From Basidiobolus meristosporus CBS 931.73 (taxonomy: Eukaryota; Fungi; Basidiobolomycota), in the NCBI GenBank assembly GCA_002104905.1, contig MCFE01000227.1, positions 1 to 64,000 of the forward strand: a stretch of DNA of 64,000 nt, written 5' to 3'. The number at the start of each line of letters is the position of its first letter. The stretch's first letter is position 1. A program made the position numbers and the translations under genes. This document shows, one piece after another, positions 858 through 43,133 of this stretch. Below the pieces are notes generated by a model. The model was not told the DNA's origin. It saw only the letters and a list, made by a program, of their open reading frames with translations, and did not search any database.

Positions 858-929
858 TTTTTGTGAAAATTATGAGTTTTCATCAAACAACACATCCCTG
901 GATTTGATTAGCTTCTTTGCTTTGGTATT

Positions 930-1973
930 TTAGATTCTGTATGCTTTACTCTCATTGCAGTAACCCAAAAATATGCATTTTACATGCTTTGGCTCAAATT
1001 TTGACCAATTTCCGGTCAGTTTCTTGGCATATGCTGTACACCCAAATATTCTTAGATGTTCTGCACTTGGTCTGTGCCCATACCATGCTTCAAATGGAGT
1101 AGAATTACAAAGTATTCTGTTATAACTCCTATTTTTAAGGTATACAGCAGTGGCAACTGATTCTGCCCAAAGACCATAGGATAATTTTTGATCATGGATC
1201 ATAGATCTTGCCATATTTATTATTGATCTATTAGCACGTTTTGCTACTCCATTTTGCTGTGGGGAGTATGGTACAGCAGTCTCATGTTTTATCCCATGAA
1301 TCTTGCAGAAGTGGATGAAGAGTTTTGAGGTATTTTTTCCACCATTGTCAGAGTGTATTTTCTTGATTTCTTCATCAGTGTCTCTCACCACCATGGCTTT
1401 AAGCTCCCTGAGCTTAGACAGAGCTTCTTTCGTTCTCTCCATGAAGTAGACCCATGTGTATCTTGTATAATCATCAATAAAAGTGATTAAATACTTCATC
1501 CCACTCAAGGATAAATATTGCATAGGTCCACACAGATCTGAGTGAATTAGATCTAGTTTTTTCTTAGTTTTGATTATCCCAGAGCTCTTCAACAATTGTC
1601 TGGCTTGTTTCCCATATATGCAGGCTTCACAGTGCTTCAAACTAGCTGCAGGATCAATTTTTACTCCAGAAATTAGCTGATCTTTGATAATTTTGCACAA
1701 ATAATTAAAATTGATGTGCGCAAATCTCCTGTGCCAAAGCATTGGTGTTTCTTCATTTAAGTTACTTATATTGGCTTCCAAATATGATGGAATATGAGTC
1801 AACTTGCACAGATTCAGATCTCTGATACCCAAAGCAATATGGGCACCATTTTGATCAGTAATCTTGCTTCCAGAATTGTTAAAGCTGAAACTGAGTCCTT
1901 CTGTGGCAACCTTGCTTACAGAAAGTAGGCTCTTGGCCATTTCTGGTACATAAAGTACTTCTTTAAAGGTCAT
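930..1973 (-). pseudogene. Copia GAG-pre-integrase plus integrase core
   Basis: WHRRFAH, CEACIYGKQ, IHSDLCGPM, FIDDYTR, HSDNGG, PQQNGVAKR (catalytic E replaced by K), CIFLGY. Confidence 0.93.
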
Positions 1974-3074: not shown

Positions 3075-3285
3075 AGACTTGTTCCATTGTGCCATTGATC
3101 ATAGTGCCAGAAAGTGCTGTATATTTTGTTGTTAATTTGATATTCAAGGGTCATATGCATGTCAATTTTGATCCCAAATTGGCACTGTATGGCATCATCT
3201 GGCACTCTGTGGCATGATCAGGCACCATCTGACATGCTATGGCACTATTGGGCACTATGATCAGCTGGAATGATGGAACAAGTCT
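3075..3285. mobile_element. 211-bp MITE, AGACTTGTTCC terminal family (PIF/Harbinger-like by inference)
   Basis: TIR AGACTTGTTCCAT / ATGGAACAAGTCT; TSD AAT at 3072-3074 and 3286-3288. The homologous copia leader near 59.1 kb shows the empty site. Confidence 0.9.
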
Positions 3286-3599
3286 AATGATTTATTGAAT
3301 GTAAAAGTAGTATTTATACTTATACATTGTCTTGGCATTACAAACAGGTAGAATAGGTTGAGAAAGGTCTCATGAACATGTGTGCAAGGTTTGGGGCTGT
3401 TTGGACAACTTTGAGAATTTTCATGTTCTGGGTACCTGGTATTTTGGTGAAAATATTCTAAGTAAGTCCCAACACAGAATTTGGTCAGTATTCTCTAGGA
3501 TTTGGAGGTAATGATATAAGTGACTAAGTCTGGTGAATATTTAGGTGGAATTACAAACTTTCTACAACAATATTTTAGCATTCTAGGAATATTCATCCA

Positions 3600-7687: not shown

Positions 7688-8338
7688 CCAAGCACCAGCA
7701 TGGGGCCGCCGACAACCGGCAAACCGAATGTAATATAGTACAACTGGAAGCACCTCTTTAAGAAATTTCATCTATTCCTAACCTCATCCTTAACTACACT
7801 TACTCTCACCGTCACCACCCCTCCCCTTCTACGCCGCCCTCATACTTCCCACCCCACCCCTCCGCTTCGATACGAGTTGCCTCTGCCTCTGTTGCTGTGA
7901 GCAGTCGATTGACAGTCTTGCTTCTCGGGTGCATCCATTCGCCTGACATTTTGTCCCAGGGAAGCATTGGAATGCTCGTGGTCTTCACTATCCCATCCAT
8001 GTCCATCAACTCCTCCCTGAATACGCCCCCCTCATTCCCATGACGCCCAACCCGATCATCTATCCTCGTAATCCCGTCGATGTATTCTACGACCCAACGA
8101 ATACTTCTTACATAAAGACGTATATATGTATGTGATGGTATAATGATGGCTGAGCTACAGCCTCGTCTCCTTTTTACGGCCCCGACTAGGCATGAGGTAG
8201 GTTTATGATGGATGTCAACCTTTCCCGCGGCATCTGAAGCGCTCTAGTTTGAGAACTCCTGGTGTTTAGATTGTATCCGGAAGAGTATTTAATCTTTGAT
8301 GTCTAACCTACGGGTTTCTATTACGAAATATGGTATCA

Positions 8339-8361
8339 GGGGGGAGGGGGAGGGGGAGGGG
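8339..8361 (+). repeat. (GGGGGA)n G-quadruplex-capable motif
   Basis: G6-A-G5-A-G5-A-G4 between the convergent 3' ends of the two genes. Confidence 0.6.
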
Positions 8362-8598
8362 AAGTGGGATTCTACAGGCTCATTAAATCTACAGGTATTA
8401 ATCTGCACGGTGATTAAATAATCAACAAAATTCAGCAAAACGAGACCAGGTTGCACTGAGTGGTGAACAGGGACGAGCAGCAAGCCAACTCCGGGTATTA
8501 GGGATGGGATGTACATTAGGTTGGGCGTTGTAGGGAACATCGGTTTTCGTGTCGCTAACCGGGTTTATCCGGGAGGTCTGGGGAGTGCGTTGTTCATT

Positions 8599-11500
8599 TC
8601 AGCCCTTCAAGGATGTTTTTTTGGCCGAGAATGGCCGACTCAACTGGTCAGGCTTGTGGAGTAATGCTTGGTGGGCATCCGCTTCGCACAACCTGCGTCC
8701 GTCGTGGGTATAGTAAACCTCCAGCGTCTGCTCACATACCTAGGGAATATCCGTCGATGTTAGCGATGGGCCCCTGCAAACCGATTCTCACACCTCGACA
8801 GTTCCTTACCGAGCAAACAAAGCACTCCGAATGGAACCTTCCCTCAGCGGTTTCCATGCATAGCCCTTCGATTGGCTGGGAGCATTCGACGCACAACGAA
8901 TGGTTCACCTCATGATAGTGCTGACAGCAATACGGGGTATTCTGGTGGATGTAGAATCTCCGATCCGGGAAGGGCTTTCGGCAAGTCTACGAAAGAAGCG
9001 GGATCCCCGTGTTAGCGCAAGGCAACATTGCAGACTTCTCTAGCCGCACCCCAATGAATCCATTGATATGTCCCACTTCTTACCTGGCATCCGAAGCATT
9101 GCGGGTGCCATTGGGCTCCGAGCGCCTTGATCGTCTTTTTCCCAATGGGTTTGGCACAGCCATGGCATTTCGGAAGTATCAGCAGGGCGTAGTCCATAGA
9201 GCAGTACACCTTCCCTTGATGCTCGACGAAGCCTGCCTCTGGCCTGACTGGCTCCTTGCAGTGGAAGCAACACAGGTGCCCGGGATGCCAAAGGGAGTCT
9301 AGGGCGGAGAAGCACTCACCGAGTATGGCAGAATCGCTTTGAGGCCGGATTAGTGGTTGTGCTTATCAAGCGGAGGGAGGGTTTACGCTGAGAGGACAGG
9401 CGTCGGGGCGTGGGGAAGGGCTGAAGTCACTTACCAGCCTGGGCAGATCGGAGCGCTTGCGGCCTTGTAATCCGCATCACAGTACAGGCCATTTCCGTCG
9501 AACCGGGCACTGGCCAGATCCAAGGGCTCGGAGCATACCAAACATTTGAAACAAACCTGGTGGAATGACTAGGTCGGTTGAAAAAGAAAAAGAAAAGAGA
9601 ATTGCTTTAGGTTTCTAACAAAATCCCAATTAACTTTCGTTGGATGACGAATCCACGGGGATTCCCCCTGTTTTCTGCGTGCTTACCTTGCCATCTAGTT
9701 CCACGCTCGCCTCATGCCCCGACACCCGCTTGGCGCACCTCTCGCACTCCCTGGATGCCTGATCCACCGCTTCGAACTCGAACAGCTCCGGCTTGATGGA
9801 TGGTTTGGCTTCGTTTCGATCGCGGCCATGTGGCTTGGCTTGCATTTGGTATTGATCGTATTTCGCTCGGTGTTGCTCCATGGTCCGGTGACTCGTCGAC
9901 TGGGATCTCTCCTGCGAATGCTTCGTGGTTGGGATCGGGTCTCTGTCGCTCGATACCGCATCTGGGCCACTCTCATCACCACCACGGCCACCCCGGATGA
10001 TGATCGGTTTGTTGGACAGAGCGATACCGGAGGGCTTGGGGCTACATTGGGGGGAGGAGAGGACAGACCTCGGCTGTACCTCGCGGGTATTGATGGCTTT
10101 CTGGGGGGCGTTTTGCGTTGTTTGGCTGTCTTGATGAGCTGGGCCATGCGGTGGGCTCGTCCTCGGCGATGTCTCTTCTGGCTTTCTCACAACGCTCGGG
10201 TACGGGATGGTCGGCTTGGTGGGTACTGGGTGTGGGCCACCGCCGCGCTTAACGCCGCCCCCTCCCCCGGTGATGGTCTTCTTCGTTGGAAGCGGGTCCA
10301 AGACGTGTCCACCTGCGAGCGCGCTCGGGTTTCCAACTGGATTTCCGCTCTTTTGCACGGGCGATGGGCCTTTCCCGCCCAGCGGCCGAGATGGTGGTTT
10401 AAGCATGGATTTAGGTGGTTCGGTGGTAGATCTGCTTGGCGGAGAGGTGGGCTTACCCCTCTCTACTGGCTTGGGCAACTGAGACTCCTTGCTCATGGCA
10501 GGTATGGTCGTCACTTGCGATAGCTTCGACTGGGGGATCTGAGTGGGGCGAGGTAAGCCGGAGCCACCTTTGGGGCCGGATGATTTCTGCGGTGCCATCG
10601 ATTTATTGCCTAGGCTGGGTCTCAACAACCGAGAGTTGCCGGGTGTCGCGGGCTTCCGGGATGCGTCCGGCCTGGTGGAAATGGTTGGTTCCTCTCCAGG
10701 TTTGCCGCTCGAATGGACCAGGGCGCTCAGTGGCAAAGAGTCTTTGTCGTTAAACAGCGATTCCGGCGCTTTGGTATTGAACACCGATCCAGGTGGTGGT
10801 AGACCTCTCGCGGAGGCACTGGGCCTGGGGGCATCCTGCTTGCTTCGCATGTCTTTCGCGTTGCCGTTACCGTTTGGGATCGGCATAGGCCTATTCGACT
10901 CGGCCAGGGATCTGATGGCCCCTTCTTTCTGGTTGGCAGTGGGGGCCCTGATCTTCGTTGGGGGCTGGAGGATTTTGGTGGGTGGCTTGGGCTTCAAATG
11001 GCTGGTGAGGCTGGGCTCGGCCTTGGTTTTGACTGGATGGGCGACTTTCGCCTCGTCCGTCATGGGCTTCGATTTTCTGGGCGTTGCCGCGGGCTGTCCA
11101 CGATCAGCATCGGGCCTGTGTGGAGCGCAGTTTTAGCGATGGTTGGGTGCGGGCGCTAGTACATTAACCAACTTACCCAGCGGTCGTTGGACGTCGAAAG
11201 CCAGCGTCTGTTGGGACGCTTTTTTTGACCGTATCCCGCTCCACCCGCTCCCTCGTGTCGGCCTGGTCCTTGGTCAGGAGGTCGTTATAGATGTTGAGGA
11301 AATCCAATGGGTTCTTCATCCCATTCTCGATGAACTCCTCTCCGTTCGTTGCTGGCGAGCTGGGCTGACTCTCTGGCTCGTCGTAATCATCCGAGTCGAT
11401 CGAGTATATGCTTGACTTACGAAATTGAAACGTTGGGAACTTCTCTATGGGTGCACGATTGGAAATGTTAGCAAACGAGACGAGGAAGTGCGCAGGACGG

Positions 11501-11840
11501 GCAGTAGCCCCGACCGGTTCTATGCAAGAATCATCAGTGGCTACCTGAGAATATGTCCTGCTCCGCGGAACTCTCTTTCAGTAGCAGAAGGGATTCTAGT
11601 TGTCCAAGACAAGGGAATGGATCCAAAGTTAGTGAGGGAACTAGCAACATCCACCACCGAATATTCCCGAATGGTGGTTGGATGCAGAAGAGGTGGAGAC
11701 GGTCTGCCTTTACCCTGGTCTATGGAGCTTCTCGGGGAACACTTGTGCTCTTCTAGGAATAGCAAATCCACCTCCTGTCCACAGTCGGTGCATTTGATGG
11801 TAGGCAAAACGTCTCGAATATGGATATCTTCTACATTCAT
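8599..11840 (-). CDS. Paxillin-like LIM-domain protein, 859 aa, 8 exons
   Basis: Exons 11714-11840, 11545-11595, 11177-11444, 9687-11115, 9435-9568, 9084-9336, 8810-8986, 8599-8739 (2580 nt, phases consistent, GT-AG). N-terminal CxxC..HxC motif, long Pro/Ser/Lys-rich region, four C-terminal LIMs (CERC..FHQVCFKCLVC; CPGC..WHPGHLCCFHC; CHGC..WHPQCFGCQTC; CVEC..FHSECFVCSVC). Confidence 0.9.
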
Positions 11841-14159
11841 GGCGCTACTTGGGTGACAGTCTGACAGTACCCACACAAATTCTCACGGGACTGTTCCACG
11901 GTTCGAACGACGGAGCAGAAGAGCAAGGAAAATCGGAGGGAAGGGAGGCTGGATGGTCACAACTAATGGGATTCGGGTTGTTCAGGAAGTTTCAGCTGGG
12001 ATGGAAGTTAAGGAGCAAAAGAAGTAAGGAGGGGATGCATCAACAAATAAATCTCTCATGGATGCGCGCTTGTCAGCCATCTATACATCTATACGGCCGC
12101 TTGCAAACTGGAACTAACTTGAGTGACCGGGCATCAACCCAATCGAATTCGCCCCCTTGATTCGCATCCAAATAATTTCCCTTGGCCGCAGTTTCATCCG
12201 GTCGAATTCGATCATGTCCCCCCTGCCCATCCGCCTCCCATTTACGCCCTTCGGTCCTCGAATGCTGTGGCGGGGGTCGTTTGGGGTGCGCGGTGGAGAG
12301 GAGGCAGACGCGAGCTGAGCCGCATCCTATGCCTTCCCGGCGCTTCCGAGGGAAGGCATGGGGCAACCGATAATATACATCCGTACATGCGGGTGCAGGG
12401 AATCCACCTGGACGGGGTCCCAGTTGCATGGCAGTATCGAGACCCACTGCAGTGTGCTGTATCCCATCAACACTGGATTCATTCACCCCGTAAACAAGCA
12501 GTAGGCCGCCTTTTGGAGTTGCTGGCCGGCCATTGCACATGCCCACTCTGACCGATGCTGGAGTGTCAGTGTAAGTGTAAGTATCGGCGTAAGCGTAAGC
12601 GAAGTGAATCCATGAAATTGCTGGCCAGGAGCTTTGCATACGGCCTAACCTCCGGTGGCTTATCCTAGCAACCATGTGATCCCCCTGGCCACTCTGATCG
12701 AATGTTCCTGAGGTTTCATATCCTCCGCTGTGACATCCGGTGACGCTGACCGAACTAGCTCCTAACGGAGGTTAAATACCCATGTTGATCACTCAGTCCT
12801 GAGTCCAAGTTGACTTCATCGACCATATACTCCCCAGGGGAGATGGCTATATTGGATAGCCTATCTGGCCACCATCATTCCTGATACACCACCCGTCTCC
12901 CATGCCCAGCTGCAGGCCTCAATTCTCGGGCCAGCCATGTCTGGCTTGCGTCCCTATCGCTGCACTTCATCTGCCATATAGTCCTTCGTTCGCAATTCGC
13001 CTGGTCTACCGGGGATTTCGGTCGCATATACCCGGCTCATTGGACTTCAAGTGGCTGCCAGCTGTCCCTGCCAAGTCAGAATAACTCCGCTGGTCGGGTG
13101 GACGAAGCCACGATATTCCCGGGTGGAGGAGAATCCCAAATGCTCTAAGCCATATGACCGGTTCGGCTATTTTTCCATCTGACCAGTGTCTCTTGACTAG
13201 TCGTGGGGCTAGGTACATCTCCGATTATCCTGCGCCTCCTTTATAGCCAGCTTCGAAATGTTACGGTGCCCCAGGTGCGTGTCAATGGTGGAATCGCCAA
13301 CGCCAGCCCACTCAAGATATCAATCCGGATCCATCATCTGGCGCAGCTTGGATTGCTCCTACTTCACAATATAATAGGTTCCAGTCATGGAACCCCATTG
13401 ACCGACCATCTTCCCGGCAAGGTCCCTCCTTAACAAACCAGCCGCGCAGGGCTTCATTTCGCACAAGGGAAGTACAATGGACCAAAGATTCCCTGCAGTA
13501 GAACATCACCCACGTTTCCAGTGACAGCCGGTTTTTCGCTTACTCTTATCACCATAACCACCAAATCACTGGGGCCGTTCCCATGACCAAGCCAAAATGA
13601 CACCCTGTGGCAGAGATTGAATCGATGAGATACACTTATTCAGTGGAGTAAAGCATAGAATTTGGGGATCCTAAAGGTTGCTCTCCAGGAACGTGAGTTT
13701 AATCATCATGATCACCAAGGTTTATGAGTATTTCTTACTAATGCAAGTCACTACACATACTACAGAGTCTTTTCTTCCGCTGCCTATGCATTCAAACAAT
13801 GCGTTTTAGCCTACACACAAGCACCTGAGAGGCGTCAGATGTTTCTCCCCTCTTGACTTGAGCACCACATGGTCACTTAGATTATAGTCCACATATTGTA
13901 GTGAGCTCTGCCATAATATCTCACCAGGACATACATGGAATATTTCACCAAAATACTGGACGCCTGCCACTTCAGATTTTATGGCTTTGAACTAAGTGCC
14001 CCAGACTTTGCACATTTGTTGTTGGAACCTTTTTACCCATGCTGTGCTCTAAGAGTTTTTGAGCTATTGGAGGTATTTGGGAAAACCAGTAGAGTATATG
14101 GTTCCCATTTGGTGGTTTATCAAATGTGAAAGTATCATTTGTACTTTTACATGATCAGA

Positions 14160-17069: not shown

Positions 17070-19293
17070 CTGTGTTTCCAACTCTTGAGAAACAGCTTTT
17101 GTCTTGTTAGTAATTCTTCTTGGCTATGATGGGATTCAGTCTGTTCTGGAATGACAGCATTAATTGGTAAGAGCTGCAGCATCTGTCTCACACTTCCCTG
17201 TCTCTGGCGTTAGTGAACTTTTTTCTCATTGCCTTTACCTCTCTCACTGCCAAATATTTCACTGTTACTTTCACTGAGAGCTTCTTGTTTCACACTACAC
17301 TTTTTCTTTGATAAATGCTGCACTGATGCATCTGTTTCTGCCTGCTTCTCCTGTGTCAGCACTCTTCCGGCACCTTGATGTTTCTTTGCCACTTGCTTGA
17401 AACTTTCAGCCTTGCTTGGGAGATGTTCCTGAGGGAGCTGCCTCTGTATAGTAATTGCAACCATATTCTACTGCATTTTATGGTTTCTGCTATACTTGAG
17501 GCACTTTCTTAGCATACAAATGTGGGCACAAGATCTATTACTTACTGGAATCCAGGATATTGTACATGGAGCATATTAAGCACATATTGCTTAGCCTTGA
17601 ATTCCTTATGGTCATATGATATACTGGCCTTAAGGTGAAGCTATGCTTGACTACTAACTGCCTCTGAAACATTATCCCACTCTTAATTATTGGACTCAAT
17701 TGTATCATGGATCTTCAATGTTGTTTGACCTCAAGGCTGGGTTATTAAAATCACAGTCTCTCCCTTTCATGCTGTCTTAGATTTTTCTGTGTGCTTGATC
17801 TCTGAGTGCTGCTAGTGTGTATTAAGGACTTTTTGGTGTTCTCCTGCTTTTGCATTGGGAAATTACTTGGTTATTGGCTATGACATTAATCCACTTGAGT
17901 TCCTTCTTTGCAGCCTATGTATGGTGTTCTCTATCTGGGATATTGGCTGCTCTACACATATTATCCACTCATCCTGCCTCAGGATCATTTTCTGATTTCT
18001 CTAGCCCATTACTTCAATCCTATTTGCCACTTCACCTAACTGCTTCATTTATGCTTTTGTATGTACTGGTATCATACTTGCTAATAATAGTGGTAGTGAT
18101 GTTACAATGGTCATTAGACTTGTTCCATTGGATAGTGCCACATTGAGCCGTGAGTGCCAATTGCAATGGAATGCTTGTAATAGTCTAGAGGTTTTCTCCT
18201 TCAAGGTTGGAAATTCTTGATCTTTCAAATGTGTATAACAGTAGCAATAGCAATATAAAGAAATCAGTATAATATTGGCTTTGTGATATTTTAGTGATGG
18301 AATACTCTTCATCACCATAGCTCCTCAAGTTCTCAGTCAAATAGGCAATTGAGAAAATCTGTGGAGCAGCAAGCTGACCATAGTTTTTAGGCAGATGAGA
18401 ATGTAGCATGTGCAGTACCTCTGGTAAAACACCAGCAAATGGACTTGTTCCGTTAGATAGTGCCACATTGAGCCGTGAGTGCCAAATGATGCCATAGTGT
18501 GCCAGAGAGGTAAAGTGAGCCTATACTTGGCCACAGAGTGTGAAACATAGCTCTGCATTGTCATGTAAAGCAGCCCCTGTGTTTAAGCCATTGCGCAGGA
18601 GAAAATCCATTTTTTGACCTTTTTTTGTGGATCAATGTAGCTCAGGATGTTGAGAGTACAGGAGAACAGAAGATATGTGTCTGGTACTCAATACCCATGG
18701 CACTCTGAATCTAGCTCCTGTAGCTTGTATCATGTCACAAAAATGAATGGCACTATCTTGGTCCACTGGTACTATCTGGCACTATAAGTGCTTTGTATAG
18801 ATCTTACTTTAGGGCTAATATTTAAATATAGTGCCAGATAGTACCAGTGGACCAAGATAGTGCCATTCATTTTTGTGACATGATACAAGCTACAAGAGCT
18901 AGATTCAGAGTGCCATGGGTATTGAGTACCAGATGCATATCTTCAATCTGTTTGTGCTCTAACACATCCTGCACAACATTGATCCAAAAAAAAAGGTCAA
19001 AAAGTGATTTTCTCCAACACAATGGGTGAAACACAGGGGCTGCTTTGCATGAAGATGCAGAGCTATGTTTCACACTTTGTGGCCAGGTAGAGGCTCACTT
19101 TACCTCTCTGGCACACTATGGCATCATTTGGCACTCACGGCTCAATGTGGCACTATCTGACGGAACAAGTCCATTTGCTGGTGTTTTACCAGAGGTACTG
19201 CACATGCTACATTCTCATCTGCCTAAAAACTATGGTCAGCTTGCTGCTCCACAGATTTTCTCAATTGCCTATTTGACTGAGAACTTGAGGAGC
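17070..19293 (+). mobile_element. En/Spm-family relic (second-gene region), host of foldback copy A
   Basis: Colinear with 21.95-23.3 kb in the same orientation; interrupted at 18116-19172. Confidence 0.7.
18116..19172. mobile_element. Foldback element copy A (core 18441-19172) with a residual 45-bp left terminus and a captured inverted flank
   Basis: TSD ATT at 18113-18115 and 19173-19175; original terminus 18116-18160; 18166-18440 is the reverse complement of 19173-19447; 40-bp central spacer. Confidence 0.92.
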
Positions 19294-19509
19294 TATGGTG
19301 ATGAAGAGTATTCCATCACTACAATATCACAAAGCCAATATTATACTGATTTCTTTATATTGCTATTGCTACTGTTATACACATTTGAAAGATCAAGAAT
19401 TTCCAACCTTGAAGGAGAAAACCTCTAGACTATTACAAGCATTCCATCCAGAATATTATGCAACACAGAACATGCAGTAGTGAACACATGTCTGAAGTTA
19501 CAGCTCATT
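19294..19509 (+). mobile_element. Truncated copy of the TG..CA-bounded element at 43134-44364
   Basis: Colinear with 43134-43350; cut exactly where a CCCTATG terminus begins at 19510. Confidence 0.6.
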
Positions 19510-20757: not shown

Positions 20758-23700
20758 GGTAGTTAGCCAGTATATTTCATCTTCCTGCTGGATCCTAGTC
20801 CCCATGTAGCTGCACTTATGCACTTGTTTGTGTGAATTCCATATTGAATGGTGTAGAAGTTGGCTTGTGACTAAGAGAAATCTGTCATACCTTGGTAGAG
20901 TTTTCCACAACAAAATTGCTGCTTTTTGCACCCAACCCAACTTTGCACTACTTAACTGCTAACCCACACATTGGGGCTGCTTAGCTTCATAATGGTTGGT
21001 TGGCTCTGCTTCTGCCATGAATGCCTCCTGAATATCTGCAAAGAACTTTTTGATATATTGTTGGTATATTCCATCTCCGTGCTGGATCCTAGTTGCCCTT
21101 ATAGGTGCTCTTTGGCTCCTGTTTGTGTGAGTTCCTTATGGAATGATGAAGAAATTGGCTTGTACCACGGAGATACCTGACATACTTGGTTAAAGTTGTC
21201 CTCACAAGATTTAGTAGCTTGTTGAGTTCAGCACACCTTTCCATTACTTAACTAACCCTATGAAAAATTATTGTAATGATCCTGTCAAAAGGCTATCACA
21301 AAGTTAAAGTCCCATGACTAAGAGGTACTGATCCCATCAGGACACCATCCAGAGACCATAAAAAAATAATTGCATCCCAGATTTCATAAAAAATTAGTTA
21401 AAATTTTTCACCACAACAACGTATAAGTGGCTTTTGATTGTTTCCCTGCCAGTTTGCTCACTCTCTGATCCTGGACACTCTATCACCTCCTATATTTGTG
21501 TGCATTGATTGGCTATTGCCTCTTTTTCACACTCCTTACTTCCTGACTCAGCTGTTTCTCTTACTTTGCATTTGTATAAATTAATTTATTTCCATTGGAA
21601 CTTCTGTTGCACCTCAATTGCCAATTGTATTGACCTATGCAAGTCCCTATACCCTACACCAACATTAAGCCCAACCCCACACTCAACAAGAAATGCCATT
21701 AAAATCCTCCACTCAATAAGTGTTTCTGCTATAACCTTCAGGTTCCTCAACTTTGTCAGGAACCCAACAGCTTTATGCCACTGTTCATTCACTGGTTCCC
21801 ACCTGTCCTGGTCTTCAGCTAGCACTGCAATTTATAGCACCTCATCTGCCAGTATTTGCAATAAATCCTTGCAATATTCAAGTGTGTTTTCTTGAGCACT
21901 GCTCTTAAAGAAGTGCTGCAACCTCTTGGTGTGCCTATTAATGTTCCAAAACTCTCCCAACACTTGTGAAAACAGCTGTTTTCTTGTTGGTAATTCTTCT
22001 TAGCTATGATGGGATTCAGTCTGCTCAGGGCTTGCTGCATTAATTTGTGAGAACTGCAGTATTTTGGATGCCTCCCTGTCTCAGGCTTGGGTAGACATTT
22101 TCCCTTTAACTTTCCCTTTATCACTGCTGCTTTGTCTGAGTGCTTCCTGTAATGACCTACATTTTCTCCTTAATAAATTCTGCACTGACTCATCTGTTCT
22201 GGCCTGCTTGTGCCTTACTGGCACTCCTCAGGCAGCCTGACATCTCTTTTCTGCTTGTTTTCAGCTCTCAACCATAGTTGGGATGGGCTCCTGTAAAAGC
22301 CCCTTGTTTAATCATTGACAGGTCCTTCACTGCTACTTTAACTGAACAATTCTGAGTAGTACTATGCAGTTTCTTAAATAAGTGTTGTGCTGGTGCATCT
22401 AAGTTGGCCTGCTTGTCCCTAATTGGCACTCTTCCAGCTACCTGACAACTCTTTGACACTAGTCTGGCACTTTTGGCCCTGCTTATAACAGGCTATTGAG
22501 AGAGCCACTGGTTTTTAGCCATGAGATCCTTGCTCTTCTGCCTTTGATAGTTTCTGCTACTCTTAAGATGCTTTCTTAGCATACCATTGATGGCCCAAAA
22601 TCTGTTTGCCTGTTTGAATCCAGGACAATACTCATGGAACAAGTCAAGTGCATTCTGCTTGGCCTTGAGTTCCTAATGGTCTAATGGTATGCTGGCCTTA
22701 AGGTTATGGCATGCTAGACTTCAGACAGCCTCTTGAATATTAGGCCACTCTGCATTACTGCACTCAACAGGTTCCTAGATATTGAATGTCTTTTGATTTT
22801 TAGGCTTTTGTATAAACATCACATTGTCTCTCTCTCATGCTATGATAGGTTTTTCTGTGGGCTTTATCTTTGGAGACTGTTGTTGTGCTTCAAAGACTGT
22901 ACAGTGTTCCTCTGCTGTTACATTAGGAAATGGCTCAATTCTTGGCTGTGACATTGAGCTACTTGAGTTCCTTTGTTGCAGTAAAAATACTGCTTTCTGT
23001 ACCTGGGATATTGATTGCTCTACACATATCATCTCCTCATCCTGCTTCCAGACTATTTCCTGATTTCTCTGGGCCAATGCATCTATCCTATCAGCCACTG
23101 CACCTAATTGCTTTGTTACTTCTTTGGTATGAGCTGAAAACATACTTATTAATATGGGTGGTGGTGATATATGATGGCCACTTGCTGGTCTTCAATTGAC
23201 GGTACTGCATTTGCTACATTCTCATCTGCCTTAGTATAATGGTCAGCTTGTGGCTCTGCAGAGGTCATCATTGCCTACTTGACTGAGAGCCTGAGGAGTC
23301 CGCATTATCACTTTCAGTGGGCACACTACTAACAAGGCCTTTTTTAGATGTAGCCCCACTTGTTGCACTGAATGTTGAAGCAAGGTGTTGTTGAACTGTT
23401 CTTGTGTTGCCATCAGTGGTGGGGTACAGTTGGGAACCAGACAACTTTGCTTTTTTTTTTGGCAGCATATATATGGATGTAAGTCAAACCAAAGGAGAAA
23501 TAGTGTTAGATACACATGTGTATGTGGTGTCACAACATCATTTATAATGCTTACAATGGTAGGTCACCATTGATCATTACATTCATGTAGGTGTGATGCC
23601 TCAAATACAAGACTGTCTTGAATTCACATGATTATAGACCAAAAAATGATATAATGGAGTGACATTGCTGAAGGTCAAACTGTTTTCCCCATGGAAAAGA

Positions 23701-23871: not shown

Positions 23872-24605
23872 AGACTTGTTCCCTTGGATAGTGCCACATT
23901 GAGCCATGAGTGCCAAATGATGCCATAGTGTGCCAGAGAGGCCAAGTGAGCCCATATTTGGCCACAGAGTGTGAAACATAGCTCTGCATCTTCATGCAAA
24001 GCAGCCCCTGTGTTTCACCCATTGTGCAGGAGAAAATCCATTTTTTGACCTTTTTTTGTGGATCAATGTAGCTCAGGATGTGTAAGAGCACAGGAGAACT
24101 GAAGACATGCTTCTAGTACTCAATACCCATGGCACTCTGAATCTAGCTCCTGTAGCTTGTATCATGTCACAAAAATGAATGGCACTATCTTGGTCCACTG
24201 GTACTATCTGGCACTATAAGTGCTTTGTATAGATCTTACTTTAGGGCTAATATTTAAATATAGTGCCAGATAGTACCAGTGGACCAAGATAGTGCCATTC
24301 ATTTTTGTGACATGATACAAGCTACAGGAGCTAGATTCAGAGTGCCATGGGTATTGAGTACTAGAAGCATGTCTTCAGTTCTCCTGTGCTCTTACACATC
24401 CTGAGCTACATTGATCCACAAAAAAAGGTCAAAAAGTGGATTTTCTCCAACACAATGGGTGAAACACAGGGGCTGCTTTGTATAAAGATGCAGAGCTATG
24501 TTTCACACTCTGTGGCCAGGTAGTGGCTCACTTGGCCTCTCTGGCACACTATGGCATCATTTGGCACCCATGGCTCAATGTGGCACTATCCAACGGAACA
24601 AGTCT
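23872..24605. mobile_element. Foldback element copy B, 734 bp
   Basis: 347-bp inverted arms, 40-bp spacer, termini AGACTTG/CAAGTCT, TSD ATT; empty site ccaaca(c/t)tatcttg in the paralog at ~47.26 kb. Confidence 0.95.
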
Positions 24606-24609
24606 ATTA

Positions 24610-26750
24610 TCTTGCTGGCTGGTTGATACTTCTATATTGGCACCTGTCTGTCTTTGTCACCTTGAGAAAACTGAGTCATGTGAGTTTGTGATACCTTTAA
24701 GCTCACCTCAGCCTTCTGAATATGGCATGCAGAGTGATAGCTGTATGATCCAGAGACTGTCCTGATTCAAACATGTGTCAATAGTTACATGGAATTCACA
24801 TCCAAATGCTACCATTGCAACATCTCCAAATCATCAGGAATTCACCACCATTGAAGGAAAACACCATTGACACTCAGGATATATTCCAGCAATACCCTGT
24901 CTGAGGAAGCTGATGCGGTCCCACAAATATTGCAAAGCTATACAGTACCACACACAGTATCAATCAAGCACAAACATATCTAAATATTCAATGGCACACA
25001 TTACAAACAGTCAAGAAGCAAGGGCTACTTTGAAGGTATGTATGACAATGCCTTTGCCTTAGCACTTGATGGATTCTCATTAAACAAGCACTTTACCAGC
25101 AAATCCTGCTGGTCACTGACTTTTACTAATCTGAATCTGCTGCCCATCTTATGGCATCAGAGCTATAATCTGATGGTAGTCACACTGGTATCTGGGCCTA
25201 AATCACCATTCAACCTGGACAGCTACCTGAATCCATTACTGGATGAATCTTGTATGCTTTCCCATGGGATAACAGTAAATGTCCATCATGCAAAAGCACA
25301 TATTATTATCTGAGTTGGAGATGCCCCAGCCATCAGCAAGATTGCAGGTTTTCTAGGTGCAATGGATAGTATTGCTGTCAAATATGTGAGATCTAGGGAA
25401 TATACTTCATCACTCCCACACATTATTATTACCCAAAGACCTGCACTAAAAGCATCATCTTTCCATAGAGAGAACATACAGAAGTCAGCATGTAATTGCA
25501 GCAAAGTTGGCAAGCTATAAGCAATTGGCCAGAATATGGAATTAATTGGAAGCTGAAGATACTTAAGATAGACTGTATCTGTTGGAGAAAAAGCTTTCCA
25601 CTGAGAGCAATGCATTTGCTTTTCAACAATATCCCTATACTGATGACCAAGTTGTACATGGGGCATTTCAAGCTATATGAGCCCTTTGCAATACCAGAGA
25701 AATTTGAAAGAATTAGCAAGATATTACAGAGTATCTGCCATCCTAAGAACTTCTCACAGGCTCCAATAAATATTCATATGCATATGCACCAATACAAGTA
25801 CAAAGACTGGATACACTTCATATGTATTTATTCAAGTGGCCTTCTGAAGCCATTCCTACCAAGTGTACATTGGAGGCATTAGGAGTCATATGTAGACATT
25901 GTAGGAATATTTATCTGTAAGCAGATCACCAATGCAAACTTGATGCATCTGCAGCTGTTGTGCAAGGGGTTTATGATAGGATTTCAGTTGCTAAACTACA
26001 AACATAAAGCTCAATGTGTACATCTCTGCTACTACTGTATCCATTCTCTACTTCAACATGCATGGTGTGTGGAGAATATTGGGCTGTGCTTCACCTTTTG
26101 GGAGTTTCCTAAGTTACAGATGTGTGGAGAGATAGAAAGATGAGTCAAATTGCAAGTACTACCTTATCCCAATCTCATCAAGAATATTACTTTCAAGTCA
26201 ATCATGGATGTGAAGAGTTGACACATGGAAAACAGTCAAGAAGAGTTGGAAAATGCTGGGGACCTATGTGCACATGGAGTCACCTATGCCTATGACATCA
26301 AGAAGCTAAGCAGCCCCAATGCTTGGGTAATCTGTTAAGTAATGCAACATTGGGATGGGTGTAACAAGTAACTAATTTCTATTAGGAAAACTCTACCAAG
26401 GTATGCCAGATTTCCCATGGTCACAGTCCAACTTCTACACCATTAAATACAGATTTTGCACAAACAAGTGCCAGAGCACACTTATAAGGGGAACCAGAAT
26501 TGAGTAGGGAGAAGGATTACATATTGGCTAAGTACCAAAAGGCTCTTTGCAGATATTGAGGAGGTACTCATGGCAGAAGTGGCAACAACTAAACATATGT
26601 TTGCAAGTTGTATATGCTACCGGCAGTACAAGGTATGTGGCAATTTTGCAAGTATTACACCCAAACGCCGCAAAGTTGAGGTGAAAAAAGTGTGTCAATT
26701 GCAGCAGGTGTGTGCATTTGTAGAGGTTAATAAGCAGGAGGCCATGGTAT
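24610..26750 (+). pseudogene. En/Spm (Tnp2/Transposase_21-like) transposase, multiply disrupted; boundaries approximate
   Basis: Motifs across frames and copies: ACVNS.MAFT..ARCP.CQE, FALALDGFSLNK, SCWPLIL.N.NLPP, GPKSP..LDSYL.PLLDE, IGDTPAI.KIAGF.GHN.RYCCQIC, AMHLLFKNIP, IHSLL..GPC.TFWE.P. This is the established En/Spm motif order. Confidence 0.85.
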
Positions 26751-27142
26751 TTTTTGATTTAAAGTGTATGTGGAATGCCCAAGGTAGTAATGGGTAGCTA
26801 ATAAAGAGAGGTGATTCTACAGTGGAATATATGAATTGCACAAAGGGAGGTAGAAAAAGGAATTACTTTTTGTTAAATTGGTACAGTAGCTTTATACAGA
26901 GCCAGCTGTAGGCCCCCATACTGCCAATATAATGCCATCACAGTCTTGCTGTGAGGCAGTTGAAATTCTGGCAAGTTTCTTGTCAAGTTTTATCACTCTA
27001 TTTGGTAGTAGAGTTAGCAAAGCACCATTGTGATCCCATTATAAGATTGCTAAGCTGCTGATATTATTATGGTCACTTAATGGGATTCTGACAGCTGATC
27101 TGGACTCAATCCACCTAAAGGACCAGACTATTTTCCATAGGG

Positions 27143-28960
27143 TGACTACCCACAATTCTGGGCTGCTTAGCTTCTTTATGCCATAGGCATAGGCAACTCC
27201 ATGTGCACATCTTTCCTAAGAATTTTCCAACTCTTCCTGGCTGTCCTCCATATGACAACTCATCACATCCAATACAGACTTGAAAGGAATAGTCTTGGTG
27301 AGACTGGAATATGGCAGTACCTACAACTTGACTTGTCTTCCTATCTCCCCACACATCCGCTACATAGGAAACTTCCAAAAGGTCACGCAATGCTACCAGT
27401 GTACTCCTGGTGGGAATTACTTCAGAAGGCCACTTGAATAAATAAATATCAAGTTTATCCAGTCTTTGTACTTGTATTGTTGCATATGCATATGAATATT
27501 GATTGGAGCCTGTGAGAAGTTCTTAGGATGGCAGATACTCTGTAATATCTTGCCAATTCTTTCAAACTTCACTGCTATCTTGACAGTCTCATATAGCCTG
27601 AAATGCCCCTTGTGCAACTTGGTCCTCAGTATAGGGATATTCTTGAAAAGCAAATGCATTGCTCCCAGTGGAAAGCTTTTGCTCCAACAGATACAGTCTA
27701 TCTTAAGTATCTTCAGCTTTCAATTGAATCCATATTCTGGACAATTACTTATAGCTTGCCAACTTTACTGCGATTACATGCTGACTTCTGTATGTTCTCT
27801 CTGTGGAAAGATGATGTTCTTATTGCAGGTCTTTGGGTAATAATAATGTGTGTAAGTAATGGAGTATATCACTTTGATCTGACATATTTGACAGCAATAC
27901 CATCTATTGTGCCCAGAAAAGCCAGCTATCTTGTTGATGGCTGGTGTATCACCTATGCAGATGATAATATGTGCATTTACATGACAGCCATTCACTGTTA
28001 TCCTTGTTGAAAGGATATAAAATTAAACCAGCAATGGATACAGGTAGCTATCAAGGTTGCACAGTGATTTTAGCTTAGATACCCTTATGACTACCATCAG
28101 AATTTGGCTCTGATACTATAGATGGGGCAGCAGATTCAGGTTGAAGAGAATCAGGGACTGTCAGGATTTGCTGGTGGTGTACTTACTAAATCAGAATCAA
28201 TCAAGTGCCAAATCAAGACATAGTTATACATACCTACAGAGTAGCCCTTCAATCTAAATTGTTTGCAATGTTTGCCATCCAATATATCAGATATGTCTGT
28301 ACTTGATTGATACTGAGTGCAGTACATCATAGCTTCACTATATTCATTAGACTGTATGAGCTTCTTCAGATGGGGTATTACCAGAAACTATCTAGAATGG
28401 GAACAGTGTTTTCCCTGACAGTGGTGGATTCCTGACAAGTTGGTCACCTTGCAATAGTGGCATATTTAGATGCCAATGTCAAGTAACTGTTAACACAAGC
28501 AGGTATCAGGATGGTTTCTGGCTCATATGCTGCCAGTAACATAATGGTTGTTCATGTATACCAAGTACATGGTAAGTTGCCTCCTAGGATGACATTGACA
28601 AGAAGTAGTGGTAAACCCTCAAAGCCCTCATTACTAGTACTAGTAGAAATGCACTACTTCTCTGGCAACAACTTCACATCATTCACCAGTAGATGGATTA
28701 TTAGGCTGACTTGACTCCATGAAATATCCTTGACATTTTTTTCCACTGGTGTTGTTTCATTGCATTTTGGGGTTTTACCTGGCTCACACAGGGTATTGTA
28801 GTTTGGGGAGATTGGCCCACAGTCCATCAGTGAGCCTGCTTCATCAGAGCTATCACTTGGCATACCATATTTAGAAGGTTGGGGTAAGCCTAAAGGTGTC
28901 ATATACTCACCTGACTCAGTTTCCACAAGGTGACAAGTACTGCTAGGTGCCATCATCAAA
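27143..28960 (-). pseudogene. En/Spm transposase relic
   Basis: ORFs 27417-27659 and 27774-27995 give MHLLFKNIPIL and HIIICIGDTPAINKIAGFSGHNRWYCCQIC. Confidence 0.82.
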
Positions 28961-29528: not shown

Positions 29529-30262
29529 AGACTTGTTCTGTTGGATAGTCCCACATTGAGCCATGAGTGCCAAATGATGCCATAGTGTGCCAGAGAGGTC
29601 AAGTGAGCCTATACTTGGCCACAGAGTGTGAAACATAGCTCTGCATCTTCATGTAAAGCAGCCCCTGTATTTCACCCATTGCACAGGAGAAAATCCATTT
29701 TTTGACCTTTTTTTGTGGATCAATGTAGCTCAGGATGTGTAAGAGCACAGTAGAACTGACAATATGCATCTGGTACTCAATACCCATGGCACTCTGAATC
29801 TAGCTCCTGTAGCTTGTATCATGTCACAAAAATGAATGGCACTATCTTGGTCCACTGGTACTATCTGGCACTATAAGTGCTTTGTATAGATCTTACTTTA
29901 GGGCTAATATTTAAATATAGTGCCAGATAGTACCAGTGGACCAAGATAGTGCCATTCATTTTTGTGACATGATACAAGCTACAGGAGCTAGATTCAGAGT
30001 GCCAAGGGTATTGAGTACCAGATGCATATCTTCAATCTGCTGGTGCTCTAATACATCCTGCACAATATTGATCCAAAAAAAAAGGTCAAAAAATGGATTT
30101 TCTCCAACACAATGGGTGAAACACAGGGGCTGCTTTGCATGAGGATGCAGAGCTATGTTTCACACTCTGTGGCCAGGTGGAGGCTATATTGGCCTCTCTG
30201 GCACACTATGGCATCATTTGGTACTCATGGCTCAATGTGGCACTATCCAACGGAACAAGTCT
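29529..30262. mobile_element. Foldback element copy C, 734 bp
   Basis: Same termini and spacer; TSD ATA at 29526-29528 and 30263-30265. Confidence 0.95.
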
Positions 30263-30334: not shown

Positions 30335-31412
30335 TGTGGTGGTGTATAAGTCCAAAGGGCAAAATACAACCAACACTTCTCAAGTGTGAATGTGTGTGGG
30401 GTGTTCACTGGGTGCGATAACCTCTGGCAAAAGCTTGCTAGGAATACTGGGTCTTTTATCTAATCTAATGTGATGGGGGATAAAGCCTCAAGCTTGTCAA
30501 GGGAAAACTATTGAACTACAATCCCCAACTTAGTTGGCGTCTTAACAAAAGTTTATAATGGCTTTGACGTCCTTTGAGATGACAATGTACTAAAGCTTCC
30601 AAAGTCAAAACAACTGTAAACTCCACCAACAGGGACTTGATAAGAATGCAGCTTTGACCAATAGTTACAAAGACTGAAAAGTATCTTTGCCTGTACAAGA
30701 ACAAACTTGGGAAAACAAACAATATAATAAAATATACCTACTCTGAGTATTCCTCACAAGTAGTGCCTCCAAGGTCAGTTGGCTGTCAGCGCGGTTTCCT
30801 GGGAGTATTGTCAGGTCTGAGTCAGAAAATAGTGGTAATAGGTAGCGGTGATCTCACTAATCAATAAGTTGGAATATTGGAAGAGGGATGATTTATTTTA
30901 AGGGATAGCCTCCCTTATATACTTTTTTGCTGCTCAATTTCTTGCTAGAAAATACTTTCCCGAAGTTTCCAGAAGGTAGTAGACAACCAATCATGTCTTT
31001 GTGTACTAAAAATAGCGCAAATTCTTGGCGGATTGTTCCATGAGACATAGTAGTACCTAGCCAATCAGGTAGTGGTAACATGAAACCTCTGTGTCATGTG
31101 GTTGCCTCTTATGGTAGTGAGATGGGGGATTATGAGACCAAGATGGTCACGTGACATGGGCACTGTTGGGGTACTTGCCATATAAGGTAACTATCTTATC
31201 TTGGCATCTCGGCAAGGAATAAGAATAGCTTGTGCAATGGGTTAATAGTGACAAATAGTTTGTCAGGTTGCATAGTAATAATCACATAGACAAAAATAGG
31301 AAATATTGCAAATTTGGGATGATAATAATATAGGCGGGGTAATCCTTTTTAGGGAAGTGAACGCATAAGAATGAGCACATCTGCCTGTGGGTGTCACTGT
31401 GACCCCACTACA
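30335..31412 (-). repeat. 3' LTR of the Ty3 element
   Basis: Direct repeat of 36447-37524; plus strand reads TGTGGTGG...CCCCACTACA. Confidence 0.96.
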
Positions 31413-31426
31413 TCCACCCCCCTCTC
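31413..31426 (-). other. Polypurine tract
   Basis: GAGAGGGGGG(TGGA) directly upstream of the 3' LTR. Confidence 0.85.
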
Positions 31427-31451
31427 AGCTTTGAACTCAGGTCAAAGCAAA

Positions 31452-33974
31452 CTAAATGTGATGTGCGAAATTCCGGTGCTTGAATAGCTTAAGTTGGTTT
31501 CCTGCCACAGGTGCTCTTAGCGGTGTTCCATCAAGTTCAGACAGGTAGTAGCTTCCATTTCCAATCACCTTAGAGACAATATATGGGCCAGACCACTTAT
31601 TGTCAAATTTGCGACTCCACTGCTTGTCTAAAGTGGAATCATAGAGCAGTACTGGATCTCCTTGCAGTAATGGCTTTGGTCTAAGGCTATGTGACTTGTC
31701 AAATGGTTCCCTGTTCTGAAGTCTTGTCTCTTTGAGTTTAGCAGCTGCTTGGGTAATATCAAGTTCATGGTGATCAAGCTGTTTGATGCGTGTAGTCAGT
31801 AGTTCTTCTGTACTCATTGTAGTTCTCCACTCTAGCATGTTCCAGGATATTGAGTCAAGCTCTATGGGAAGAACGCAATCATGTCCGTAAAGCAATTTGA
31901 ATGGAGATAGACCTGTGCTGCACTTTGTAGTGATTCTATCTGCCCAGAGTGCTAGATGAAGCTGTGTAGGCCACTGTAGTGTCATGTTGTTGCAGCTCTT
32001 GACCAGGGAGTTAACTAGCGGGCCATGGCCTCTTTCAACCATTCCATTGGCCTGTGGGTGATAAGCGGTAGTGAAAGCAATATGTATCTTGTATTGTGAG
32101 CAGAGTTCCTGGATCAAATTTGAGGTCATTTCTCCTCGGTCAGCAACAAACTGGCTGATGCAGCCAAATCTGCATATTATATCTTCAAGAATAAATCTCC
32201 ATATGGTGTGGCTTTTGTTATTGGGTAGGGCTCGAGCTTCTACCCACCCACTCAGATCATCTCTGGCAACAACAAGGTACTTCTTGGTTCCAGCAGTTGG
32301 CATGTGGACCAGGTCAATGCCAACCTTCTGCCATAGACAAGGTGTGTAGGTTGGATGGAGTGGCTCCTCATATCTCTTGGTTGACCTTCTTTGGCAAATG
32401 TCACAAGATTCAACAAAGTGTTGGACATCATGATACATATGCTCCCAGTAGTATCTACTGGAAACAACATTGTAAGTGGCATCTCTGCCTCTATGACCAC
32501 CGGGTCTTCCTTCATGAAGGCTTGACATAATAGTCAGTTGTTCTTGGAGCTCAACTATAACTCTTCTTGGTGTCTGTCCAGGCTTTACTCGTTTGAAGAG
32601 GAGGCCGTCTTTTATGTAGAAATGATGGGCCTTCTTCCTGAGCTTTCTGAAATCATGTGGGCTCATTTCTGGTGGCTTCTCTAAGGTTCTCAGATAGTCT
32701 TGAATGGTGTTCCACGTAGAGTTGCTGGGCTTCTTCACGTGTAGTTGTCGGATTTCTGCATCAATTATGTCATCAAAGTCAGGGTCCATATCTTCAGACA
32801 ACTGTGGTCCCTTCCTGGAGAGTGCATCAGCCACAACATTTGTCTTGCCAGGGATATGTCTGACCTCAAAGTCAAACATTTTCAGCCATGCCATCCACCA
32901 ATTTGTGGCATCATCAGGTAGATCAGGCTTGTTGATCATTCCTATAAGTGGCTTAGCATCTGTCTCCAGGATGAAATGTGTCATGTAGAGTTGTGACTTC
33001 AGCTTTCTCAGCATCTTCACAACTCCTAGTAGCTCTCTCTTAATCTGTGAGTATCTTTGTTCTCTAGGAGAGAAGAGGCAGCTCTCATATCTGCAGGTAT
33101 AGCGGTTACCATCTTCATCATCTTGGCCAAGTAGTGCTCCAGCTCCTACAGGGCTTGCATCCACCGTCAAGATAGGTGGGCATTCAGTGTTCTGATAGTC
33201 AAGAGGTCTCAGAACTGGTGGAGATACTAAGGCCTCTTTTAGTAATTGCATGGCTTCTTCTTGCTCTTCTCCCCAGTTAAATGGGGCATTCTTTCTCTGT
33301 AGTCGGTAGATTGGTTCTGCTATCTCAGAAAATCTTGGGATCCAGATCCTAAAGAACCCACAAGCTGCCACAAAGCCACGAGCTTGTGTTAGATTTGTGG
33401 GGGTAGGCCAGTTGCATATCTTTTGTGTCTTGGAGTCTCCGGGTGAACGGCCAAATGTGTTGCATTTTTGTCCAACAATGGATATCTCTGATACACCAAA
33501 GCTGCTTTTCTCACCACTGATGGTGAGTCCAGCTTCTTCAATGGCTCCTAATATGACATCATTGTCTGAAATATGGTCATAGACAAACTTTCTTACTCCA
33601 GGCATAACTTCAGTTGTGTCCTGGAGTTTTGGTCCTTTGATGCCTAAGTCATCAACAAAGACAGCAAGTTTCTCAGGTATAAACTGGTAGAGCACATTTA
33701 CCATGCACCTCTGGAACTGAGCCACGGAGTTTGTTGCCCCTTGGCTAAGTCTTGTCATTCTTAACAGTCCAAATGGTGTCTGGAGTGCAAACATATCTCT
33801 TGATGTCTCATCTAGGGGAATCTGGTCGTATCCTGAGTAGAGATCATATGTTGAGTAGATAGGAGTGACCACTAAAGCTTTCTGCAAAGTCATCAATAGA
33901 CGGAGGTATTGCGGCATCTCTGATAGTGACAGCATTTGCAGGTTGCATGTCTTGAATGAATCGGAGCTTCCCAT
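31452..33974 (-). CDS. Ty3 pol, C-terminal part: RT, RNase H, integrase
   Basis: YSTYDLYSGYDQ, LSQGATNS, VFVDD, DASPVG, YSQIKRE, NVVADALSR, H..GH..CDIC zinc finger, IDLV..DRG..YHPQANGMVER. The true reading frame starts near 33863. Confidence 0.93.
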   Translation of the reverse strand: MGSSDSFKTCNLQMLSLSEMPQYLRLLMTLQKALVVTPIYSTYDLYSGYDQIPLDETSRDMFALQTPFGLLRMTRLSQGATNSVAQFQRCMVNVLYQFIPEKLAVFVDDLGIKGPKLQDTTEVMPGVRKFVYDHISDNDVILGAIEEAGLTISGEKSSFGVSEISIVGQKCNTFGRSPGDSKTQKICNWPTPTNLTQARGFVAACGFFRIWIPRFSEIAEPIYRLQRKNAPFNWGEEQEEAMQLLKEALVSPPVLRPLDYQNTECPPILTVDASPVGAGALLGQDDEDGNRYTCRYESCLFSPREQRYSQIKRELLGVVKMLRKLKSQLYMTHFILETDAKPLIGMINKPDLPDDATNWWMAWLKMFDFEVRHIPGKTNVVADALSRKGPQLSEDMDPDFDDIIDAEIRQLHVKKPSNSTWNTIQDYLRTLEKPPEMSPHDFRKLRKKAHHFYIKDGLLFKRVKPGQTPRRVIVELQEQLTIMSSLHEGRPGGHRGRDATYNVVSSRYYWEHMYHDVQHFVESCDICQRRSTKRYEEPLHPTYTPCLWQKVGIDLVHMPTAGTKKYLVVARDDLSGWVEARALPNNKSHTIWRFILEDIICRFGCISQFVADRGEMTSNLIQELCSQYKIHIAFTTAYHPQANGMVERGHGPLVNSLVKSCNNMTLQWPTQLHLALWADRITTKCSTGLSPFKLLYGHDCVLPIELDSISWNMLEWRTTMSTEELLTTRIKQLDHHELDITQAAAKLKETRLQNREPFDKSHSLRPKPLLQGDPVLLYDSTLDKQWSRKFDNKWSGPYIVSKVIGNGSYYLSELDGTPLRAPVAGNQLKLFKHRNFAHHI

Positions 33975-36306: not shown

Positions 36307-36424
36307 TTTGGGTACGTAGGTTGGTGTTATAGTCTTGATAATATCGGTAGTCTTGTTTCAATAAATGGGTGACGGCTCAAATCTTCAGGTAAATCTTGTT
36401 GGGTCCTAGGGAGCTTGTATGAAC

Positions 36425-36442
36425 CCCCCACGTTGGGTGCCA
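36425..36442 (-). other. Primer binding site, tRNA-Lys(CUU)-type
   Basis: TGGCACCCAACGTGGGGG, 4 nt from the 5' LTR, compared with the known Lys1,2 PBS TGGCGCCCAACGTGGGGC. Confidence 0.8.
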
Positions 36443-36446
36443 AATA

Positions 36447-42945: not shown

Positions 42946-43133
42946 CCCAATGAGAAATTGCTCCAATGATCCCATCAAAAGGCTGTCATAAGTTTAAAGT
43001 CTCATGACTAAGAGGTATGATCACCTCCCAATATTGTGCAAAACCATCAAAAAATAATTGCACCCCAGATTTCACCAAAACCTTAGCCAAAGTTCTTCAT
43101 CACAACAATTCAAGGGTGGCTTTTGATTGGTTC

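Follow-up and report, generated by a model that had tools for sequence, protein, structure and literature searches.

The foldback family and its surroundings

The window analyzed here is the whole 64-kb stretch of DNA from Basidiobolus meristosporus CBS 931.73 (contig MCFE01000227.1, positions 1–64,000). It contains four copies of a foldback element, 732–734 bp long, with arms of about 347 nt and a loop of 40 nt. All have the ends AGACTTGTTCC...GGAACAAGTCT, and each carries a 3-bp target duplication:

18441–19172: copy A, 732 bp, target duplication ATT
23872–24605: copy B, target duplication ATT
29529–30262: copy C, target duplication ATA
48362–49095: copy D, target duplication AAT

The loop has the same orientation in all four copies. 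A 29-nt pattern of the terminus matches nine times in the sequence observed, while none of 100 shuffled sequences gave even one match. No open frame of at least 95 aa lies entirely inside copies A–D; a few overlapping frames run from a flank across the end of a copy. The family is a non-coding, MITE-type element, with long inverted arms, conserved termini and a target duplication of fixed length at independent sites. The window holds no transposase-coding partner with foldback ends.

Several further observations concern the same family. A 212-bp miniature element at 3075–3286 has foldback-family termini (AGACTTGTTCCATTG...GGAACAAGTCT), internal GGCAC motifs and a 3-bp duplication AAT. Since it shares the foldback ends, the family includes short non-foldback members that keep little beyond those ends. 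The right arm of copy B shows left-arm states at about columns 187–228 of the arm alignment, and the left arm of copy D shows right-arm states at columns 199–202. These conversion patches indicate that the arms template each other within one copy. A 25-nt stretch invariant in all eight arms returned no hits in a metagenome scan. The window has 54 occurrences of the motif AGTGCCA, where about 8 would be expected, and the hits are concentrated in the foldback copies.

From 13000 to 64000, the window consists mostly of nested, decayed fragments and copies (70–85% identical) of a single En/Spm-family element whose termini read CCCTATG. Just one clear transposase remnant lies in this nest, a Pfam Transposase_21 match at 47929–48300. 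All four foldback copies are inserted in members of this En/Spm family, at different sites. Empty-site paralogues were found for the insertion sites of copies A and D; those of copy D, at 25369–25413 and 27856–27906, are located in the two arms of an inverted arrangement, 3 kb long, of En/Spm-family sequence (25054–28216).

Other features of the window include Ty1/copia-type integrase and reverse-transcriptase open frames at its start (135–1973, minus strand) and a young Ty3/gypsy-type LTR retrotransposon at 30335–37524. The LTRs of the latter are 1,078 bp long (30335–31412 and 36447–37524) and 99.0% identical, and between them lie two long open frames, one of 820 aa that includes a gag-like DUF4100 part and one of 840 aa with reverse transcriptase, RNase H and integrase. 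Among Atlas clusters with DUF4100, Streptophyta or Basidiomycota are the commonest source. At 8000–12000 lies a GC-rich island, with 54.5% GC where the rest has about 40%, and both of its strands have long open frames that overlap; one of these, a 477-aa frame at 9630–11063 on the minus strand, has no Pfam match and only sub-threshold Atlas leads.

Layout of the copy A locus

From left to right, the locus reads target duplication ATT, a 45-bp orphan left end, the filler TTGCA, a mirrored flank and a complete 732-bp foldback element. Its features are:

18113–18115 (+): left target duplication ATT; a second ATT lies at 19173–19175, and the paralogue has a single ACT at the site
18116–18160 (+): orphan original left end, element positions 1–45, beginning AGACTTGTTCCATTGG...; it can be aligned to the corresponding ends of B, C and D
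18161–18165 (+): filler TTGCA, 5 nt, at the putative end-joining junction; unlike the element consensus and unlike the mirrored flank
18166–18440 (−): newly made inverted copy of the right flank, 275 bp, including AAT (the target duplication reverse-complemented) at 18438–18440
18441–18485 (+): re-copied left terminus, positions 1–45 and possibly to 82, with the right arm as its template; private G1 and A15, one mismatch to the right arm (18454)
18486–18786 (+): original inner left arm, with left-type states at 12 of 13 diagnostic columns
18787–18826 (+): central loop, 40 nt, between the inner arms
18827–19172 (+): right arm and right terminus (...GGAACAAGTCC), the template of the re-copied terminus; right-type at 13 of 13 columns, with a terminal C where the family has T
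19173–19292 (+): original right flank, part 1, decayed En/Spm-family internal sequence, starting with the right target duplication ATT
19293–19447 (+): second part of the original right flank, a repeat of no assigned class; copying ended at 19447, within this repeat and at no pre-existing boundary

The palindrome at copy A spans 1,282 bp and is near-perfect, with the orphan left end standing before it. Its outermost parts, 18166–18440 and 19173–19447, are reverse-complementary at 274 of 275 positions, the sole mismatch being T at 18291 against C at 19322, and the mirror symmetry breaks off sharply at 18165/19448. An earlier note on this DNA had described the mirrored 275 bp with one mismatch, and both its coordinates and its description are correct. 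The ATT duplication, the 45-bp original left end and the TTGCA filler that it reported also lie exactly where it placed them.

The orphan end carries the family-consensus bases A1 and G15 and, at 18134 and 18153, two subterminal AGTGCCA motifs. Compared with the right end of copy A, it has other bases at positions 1, 12, 14 and 15. For the filler, we considered a templated origin: by eye, the 7 nt CAATTGC at the junction match 19262–19268. This match was discounted, as it is within chance expectation.

The earlier note had suggested surveying other copies for mirrored flanks. Copies B, C and D have none, with a mirror identity of just 16–19 of 60 positions, and copy A is alone among the four foldback copies of the window in this respect. 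We also rejected the reading that the 1.28-kb palindrome represents a longer variant of the family. In copies B, C and D, the same termini are bordered by direct 3-bp duplications and then by unrelated flanks, and the paralogue of the insertion site identifies the right flank as host sequence.

A single insertion and the direction of copying

Both flanks of copy A belong to one old repeat family, of which an uninterrupted paralogue lies at 23010–23340 (also given as 22534–23298). The paralogue is collinear with the left flank up to 18115 and continues directly into the right flank from 19176, the gap amounting to one target triplet only. Because it crosses the insertion site uninterrupted, the orphan end (18116) and the right end (19172) delimit one insertion. 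The alternative that the orphan end stems from a second insertion was rejected, since this end has the matching ATT duplication at the exact site set by the paralogue.

The paralogue also gives the direction of copying. The right 275 bp are collinear and co-oriented with it, so the right copy is the original and the left 275 bp are the copy. The left 275 bp are inverted relative to the family sequence that spans both flanks. We tried the opposite assignment, with the left copy as the original, and rejected it because collinearity and shared orientation with the left flank in the paralogue hold for the right copy only. At the one mismatch, the right copy (19322) and a paralogue outside the locus (43133–43351) both have C, which places the derived base (18291) in the left copy. 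The repeat at the far end of the tract runs unbroken to 19509, past the tract end at 19447; this position is therefore where copying stopped and no older junction.

The duplication is recent. The duplicated material differs at 2 of 320 positions (18291 and 18454), with 1 of 275 in the mirrored tract and 1 of 45 in the re-copied terminus. By blastn, the foldback copies diverge by about 5.5–15% and the copies of the host element by about 19–27%. Since the divergence within the duplication is far below both, the event is recent relative to both the foldback copies and the host family.

What was replaced inside the element

We aligned the eight arms of the four copies together with the orphan end. 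Left and right arms differ consistently at 13 columns, all within positions 83–348. The left arm of copy A is left-type at 12 of these 13 columns and its right arm is right-type at all 13; between positions 83 and 240, an alignment of the two arms contains 27 mismatches and 2 gaps. The terminus behaves differently: G1 and A15 are found in the right end and the new left end of copy A only, and occur neither in the orphan end nor in the six arms of B, C and D. Position 35 is G in the orphan, re-copied and right ends alike.

Private G1 and A15 at the new left terminus, combined with a left-type inner arm, mean that the outer left arm was templated by the right arm while the inner part is original. 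The earlier note had reached the same view, that the inner left arm keeps its left-type signature and only the outer part was re-copied, and the 12 of 13 diagnostic columns and the private terminal variants bear it out. The duplicated right terminus with the private GGACTT variant, also claimed there, is present: the inner left terminus reads GGACTT...CCGTTAG and the right end, reverse-complemented, reads GGACTT...CCGTCAG.

The switch from re-copied to original sequence lies between positions 16 and 82, as positions 1–82 have no column that is diagnostic of left or right arms. Given the 45-bp stub, a break point at 45/46 would be the simplest choice and is favored on the sequence, since it would require no loss of sequence. 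The break point so placed lies directly 3′ of the second AGTGCCA motif (18153–18160), which may be coincidence.

The captured flank

The captured flank combines two repeat families, which the earlier note had given as 121 bp of the second gene of an En/Spm element and 154 bp of an LTR-like family. The division into two families stands, with the change at 19292/19293 and lengths of 120 and 155 bp.

The first part (19173–19292) is 74–81% identical to 23201–23298 and 46579–46698. In other copies, this family lies about 1.5 kb from sequence with a Transposase_21 (En/Spm/tnp2) remnant, the match at 47929–48300 (E-value 1.5e-8, above the Pfam cut-off). The 120-bp family is thus physically part of elements that bear Transposase_21, which supports its description as En/Spm-family internal sequence. 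The attribution to a second gene has no Pfam support, as Pfam scans of open frames in both flanks and in the paralogues came back empty.

The second part (19293–19447) has one further copy in the window, at 43133–43351, with 80% identity and an alignment that continues through 19447 to 19509. No evidence of an LTR identity for this repeat was found in the window, and the LTR-like label is unsupported. At 19510, the CCCTATGG terminus of another En/Spm-family copy starts.

Proposed mechanism

The structure is probably the product of a break or gap at position 45/46 of the left arm, followed by intrastrand snap-back of the arms, synthesis of about 320 nt and end joining to the remaining stub. A 734-bp foldback element would first have inserted into an old En/Spm-family fragment, generating the 3-bp duplication ATT. 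A later break or repair gap would have fallen at left-arm position 45/46. On the right-hand fragment, resection would have made the 3′-ending strand single-stranded across the element, allowing its left-arm portion to snap back onto the right arm of the same strand. A DNA polymerase could then extend the paired 3′ end with the same strand as template, first across the outer 45 nt of the right arm and next across 275 nt of the right flank. After about 320 nt, the new strand would be displaced and unfold. It would finally be joined to the left fragment, which had retained element positions 1–45, with 5 nt of filler added, and fill-in would complete the duplex. The initiating lesion may have been a break at random, the cutting of an extruded hairpin by a nuclease, or excision by transposase with interrupted copying from the sister chromatid, in which the nascent strand would have snapped back.

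The geometry that these steps call for is present in a predicted fold. The bottom strand of 18486–19250, folded as single-stranded DNA, has a predicted free energy of −312 kcal/mol (z −39.6). In this fold, the 3′ end is fully paired to the right arm, and the outer right arm and the flank are left as a 5′ template. The stop of the copied tract inside a repeat that runs unbroken to 19509 is expected of aborted synthesis, and a 5-nt filler without microhomology fits end joining. The earlier note had proposed that the right terminus and 275 bp of flank were re-copied by fold-back-primed synthesis; this is now supported by the empty-site paralogue, by the private variants and arm types, by the predicted primer–template hairpin and by the filler junction.

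The main alternative dispenses with a double-strand break. During replication, the nascent strand would snap back at the arms, copy the right terminus and 275 nt of flank, and return at left-arm position 45. The same hairpin geometry would drive this template switch and give the same product, so that sequence alone cannot tell it from break repair, and the arm-to-arm patches in copies B and D point to common templating within elements of this family. Nevertheless, the junction of return has 5 nt of filler and lacks microhomology, as would be expected of end joining more than of a switch back guided by homology, and the retained 45-bp stub follows automatically from a break. We therefore regard a replication template switch as unlikely.

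An error of sequencing or assembly is another candidate. Palindromes and dense repeats are prone to misassembly, and a fold-back chimeric long read or a mis-join at palindromic repeats could in principle simulate the locus, the real genome then having a plain foldback insertion. However, a simple fold-back chimera makes one turn-around, whereas here two specific junctions are needed, and the sequence leads back into the correct left flank by way of an orphan end that has the matching target duplication. The duplicated parts differ from each other at 18291 and 18454. Three differences separate the orphan end from the re-copied one, of which it is thus not a second copy. An artefact on these grounds is very unlikely.

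Silencing and function

The earlier note had likened the locus to Mu killer and suggested a possible route to trans-silencing loci. If transcribed, the copy A locus would yield a long hairpin RNA, as would any foldback copy. On a functional reading, the palindrome would be a selected hairpin of the Mu killer type, whose read-through double-stranded RNA would be processed to small RNAs that silence the En/Spm family and other repeats in trans. In favor of this reading, the locus is an inverted duplication of transposon-derived DNA, as is Mu killer (PMC3440606), and composite insertions of Ac/Ds likewise trigger siRNA silencing (bioRxiv 10.1101/2020.01.07.897926).

The captured DNA has little in the window to act on. 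Exact matches of its 275 bp to the rest of the window amount to two overlapping 21-mers, which form one 22-nt run, and include no 24-mer, and this despite at least four related stretches of the two captured families there. The window contains no near-identical, active target: the relatives are 74–81% identical and share no 24-mer with it. For the foldback arm, in contrast, 143 of 278 24-mers recur in its sister copies in the window. At 74–81% identity, the elements from which the captured DNA derives are old and decayed and leave little to silence, and every ordinary foldback copy is already a hairpin with 347-bp arms. The likeness to Mu killer is an analogy only and is unsupported; selection for such a role is highly improbable, and the locus most likely has no function.

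Mobilization and significance

The 275-bp copy is enclosed by two intact ends, the orphan left one at 18116 and the right one at 19172, a layout of the Pack type. The 212-bp element at 3075–3286 keeps little beyond short ends, which suggests that short ends may suffice for movement and that the composite could be mobilized. Further copies of the composite with their own target duplications were not found in the window, which has one orphan end and one mirrored tract. It is quite unlikely that hairpin-shaped DNA transposons generally acquire neighboring DNA through snap-back repair and that the 1,057-bp composite could move as a unit, with its passenger inside a longer hairpin. If it were true, copy A would document in sequence a mechanism of flank acquisition, a poorly explained step for Pack-type elements, and such repair would be a possible source of new hairpin-RNA loci from arbitrary flanking DNA, genes included.

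Copy A is an unusually legible natural fossil of fold-back-primed repair: its sequence preserves every intermediate, from the stub and the filler through the copied tract to the re-copied terminus and the inner arm that was kept. The locus shows that, in a wild genome, inverted duplication of neighboring DNA can be primed from the long arms of foldback transposons. If events of this kind recur, they would extend the arms of the elements, place flanking DNA inside mobilizable ends and create long hairpins from any neighboring sequence. As a single event in decayed repeats, this one has no demonstrated consequence.

Comparison with known systems

Fold-back-primed repair has so far been characterized mainly at induced breaks in yeast and has been inferred in cancer genomes. 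A second point of reference is abortive gap repair, in which templated synthesis breaks off early and filler is added as the ends are joined, most often leaving an internal deletion. Interrupted gap repair after transposon excision has reportedly been described by Rubin and Levy in 1997 and by Hsia and Schnable in 1996, and filler joins are also reported from rice. The early stop and the filler join are alike at copy A, but here the nascent strand would have used itself as template, so that the outcome is a gain of inverted flank.

Mu killer (PMC3440606) silences an active family whose transposase gene and terminal repeat it carries in duplicate, and its transcription comes from a flanking gene. 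Both loci are transposon-associated inverted duplications able to form a long hairpin RNA. Copy A, by comparison, duplicates unrelated, decayed flank, and its match to copies in the window is too low for 24-nt guides. Alternative-transposition composites of Ac/Ds (bioRxiv 10.1101/2020.01.07.897926) are also aberrant DNA-transposon events that produce inverted duplications including flank. These arise when transposase acts on the ends of two elements, with re-replication, whereas copy A has a probable break 45 bp inside one element and a filler join.

Foldback inversions that proceed through hairpin-capped or dicentric chromosomes (PMC10622511, PMC7467729) similarly begin with intrastrand annealing at inverted repeats exposed by resection, followed by fill-in. 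In those events, the other chromosome fragment is lost and the duplication extends to the chromosome end; at copy A, it stops after 275 bp and the left fragment was rejoined. Because the duplication is short and the left fragment was recaptured, the hairpin-capped or dicentric route fits poorly, and no capped intermediate is needed.

The closest match is with local foldback inversions in yeast, where a hairpin anneals near a break, Pol delta carries out synthesis, the nascent strand is displaced and the opposite end is captured through NHEJ or Alt-EJ (PMC11724301, Yu et al. 2024). Under the proposed mechanism, the shared features are an inverted repeat beside a break, intrastrand annealing and an inverted copy of adjacent sequence inserted at the break. 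Copy A has an inverted copy next to a re-copied terminus, pairing of the 3′ end in the predicted fold and a filler junction. The proposed mechanism has good support and agrees with this known repair pathway, with the caveat that its tract, at about 320 nt, exceeds the yeast range of 5 to 150-odd bp (PMC11724301). The yeast inversions are primed by microhomology of 10 bp, have tracts of mostly 5–34 bp and are captured by end joining with 0–5 bp of microhomology (PMC11724301). Copy A is a new natural example of an already known kind of repair event, and differs from those in yeast (PMC11724301) in that its primer is a transposon arm of about 300 nt, its tract is about 320 nt long, and the event is natural and fixed and does not stem from an induced break.
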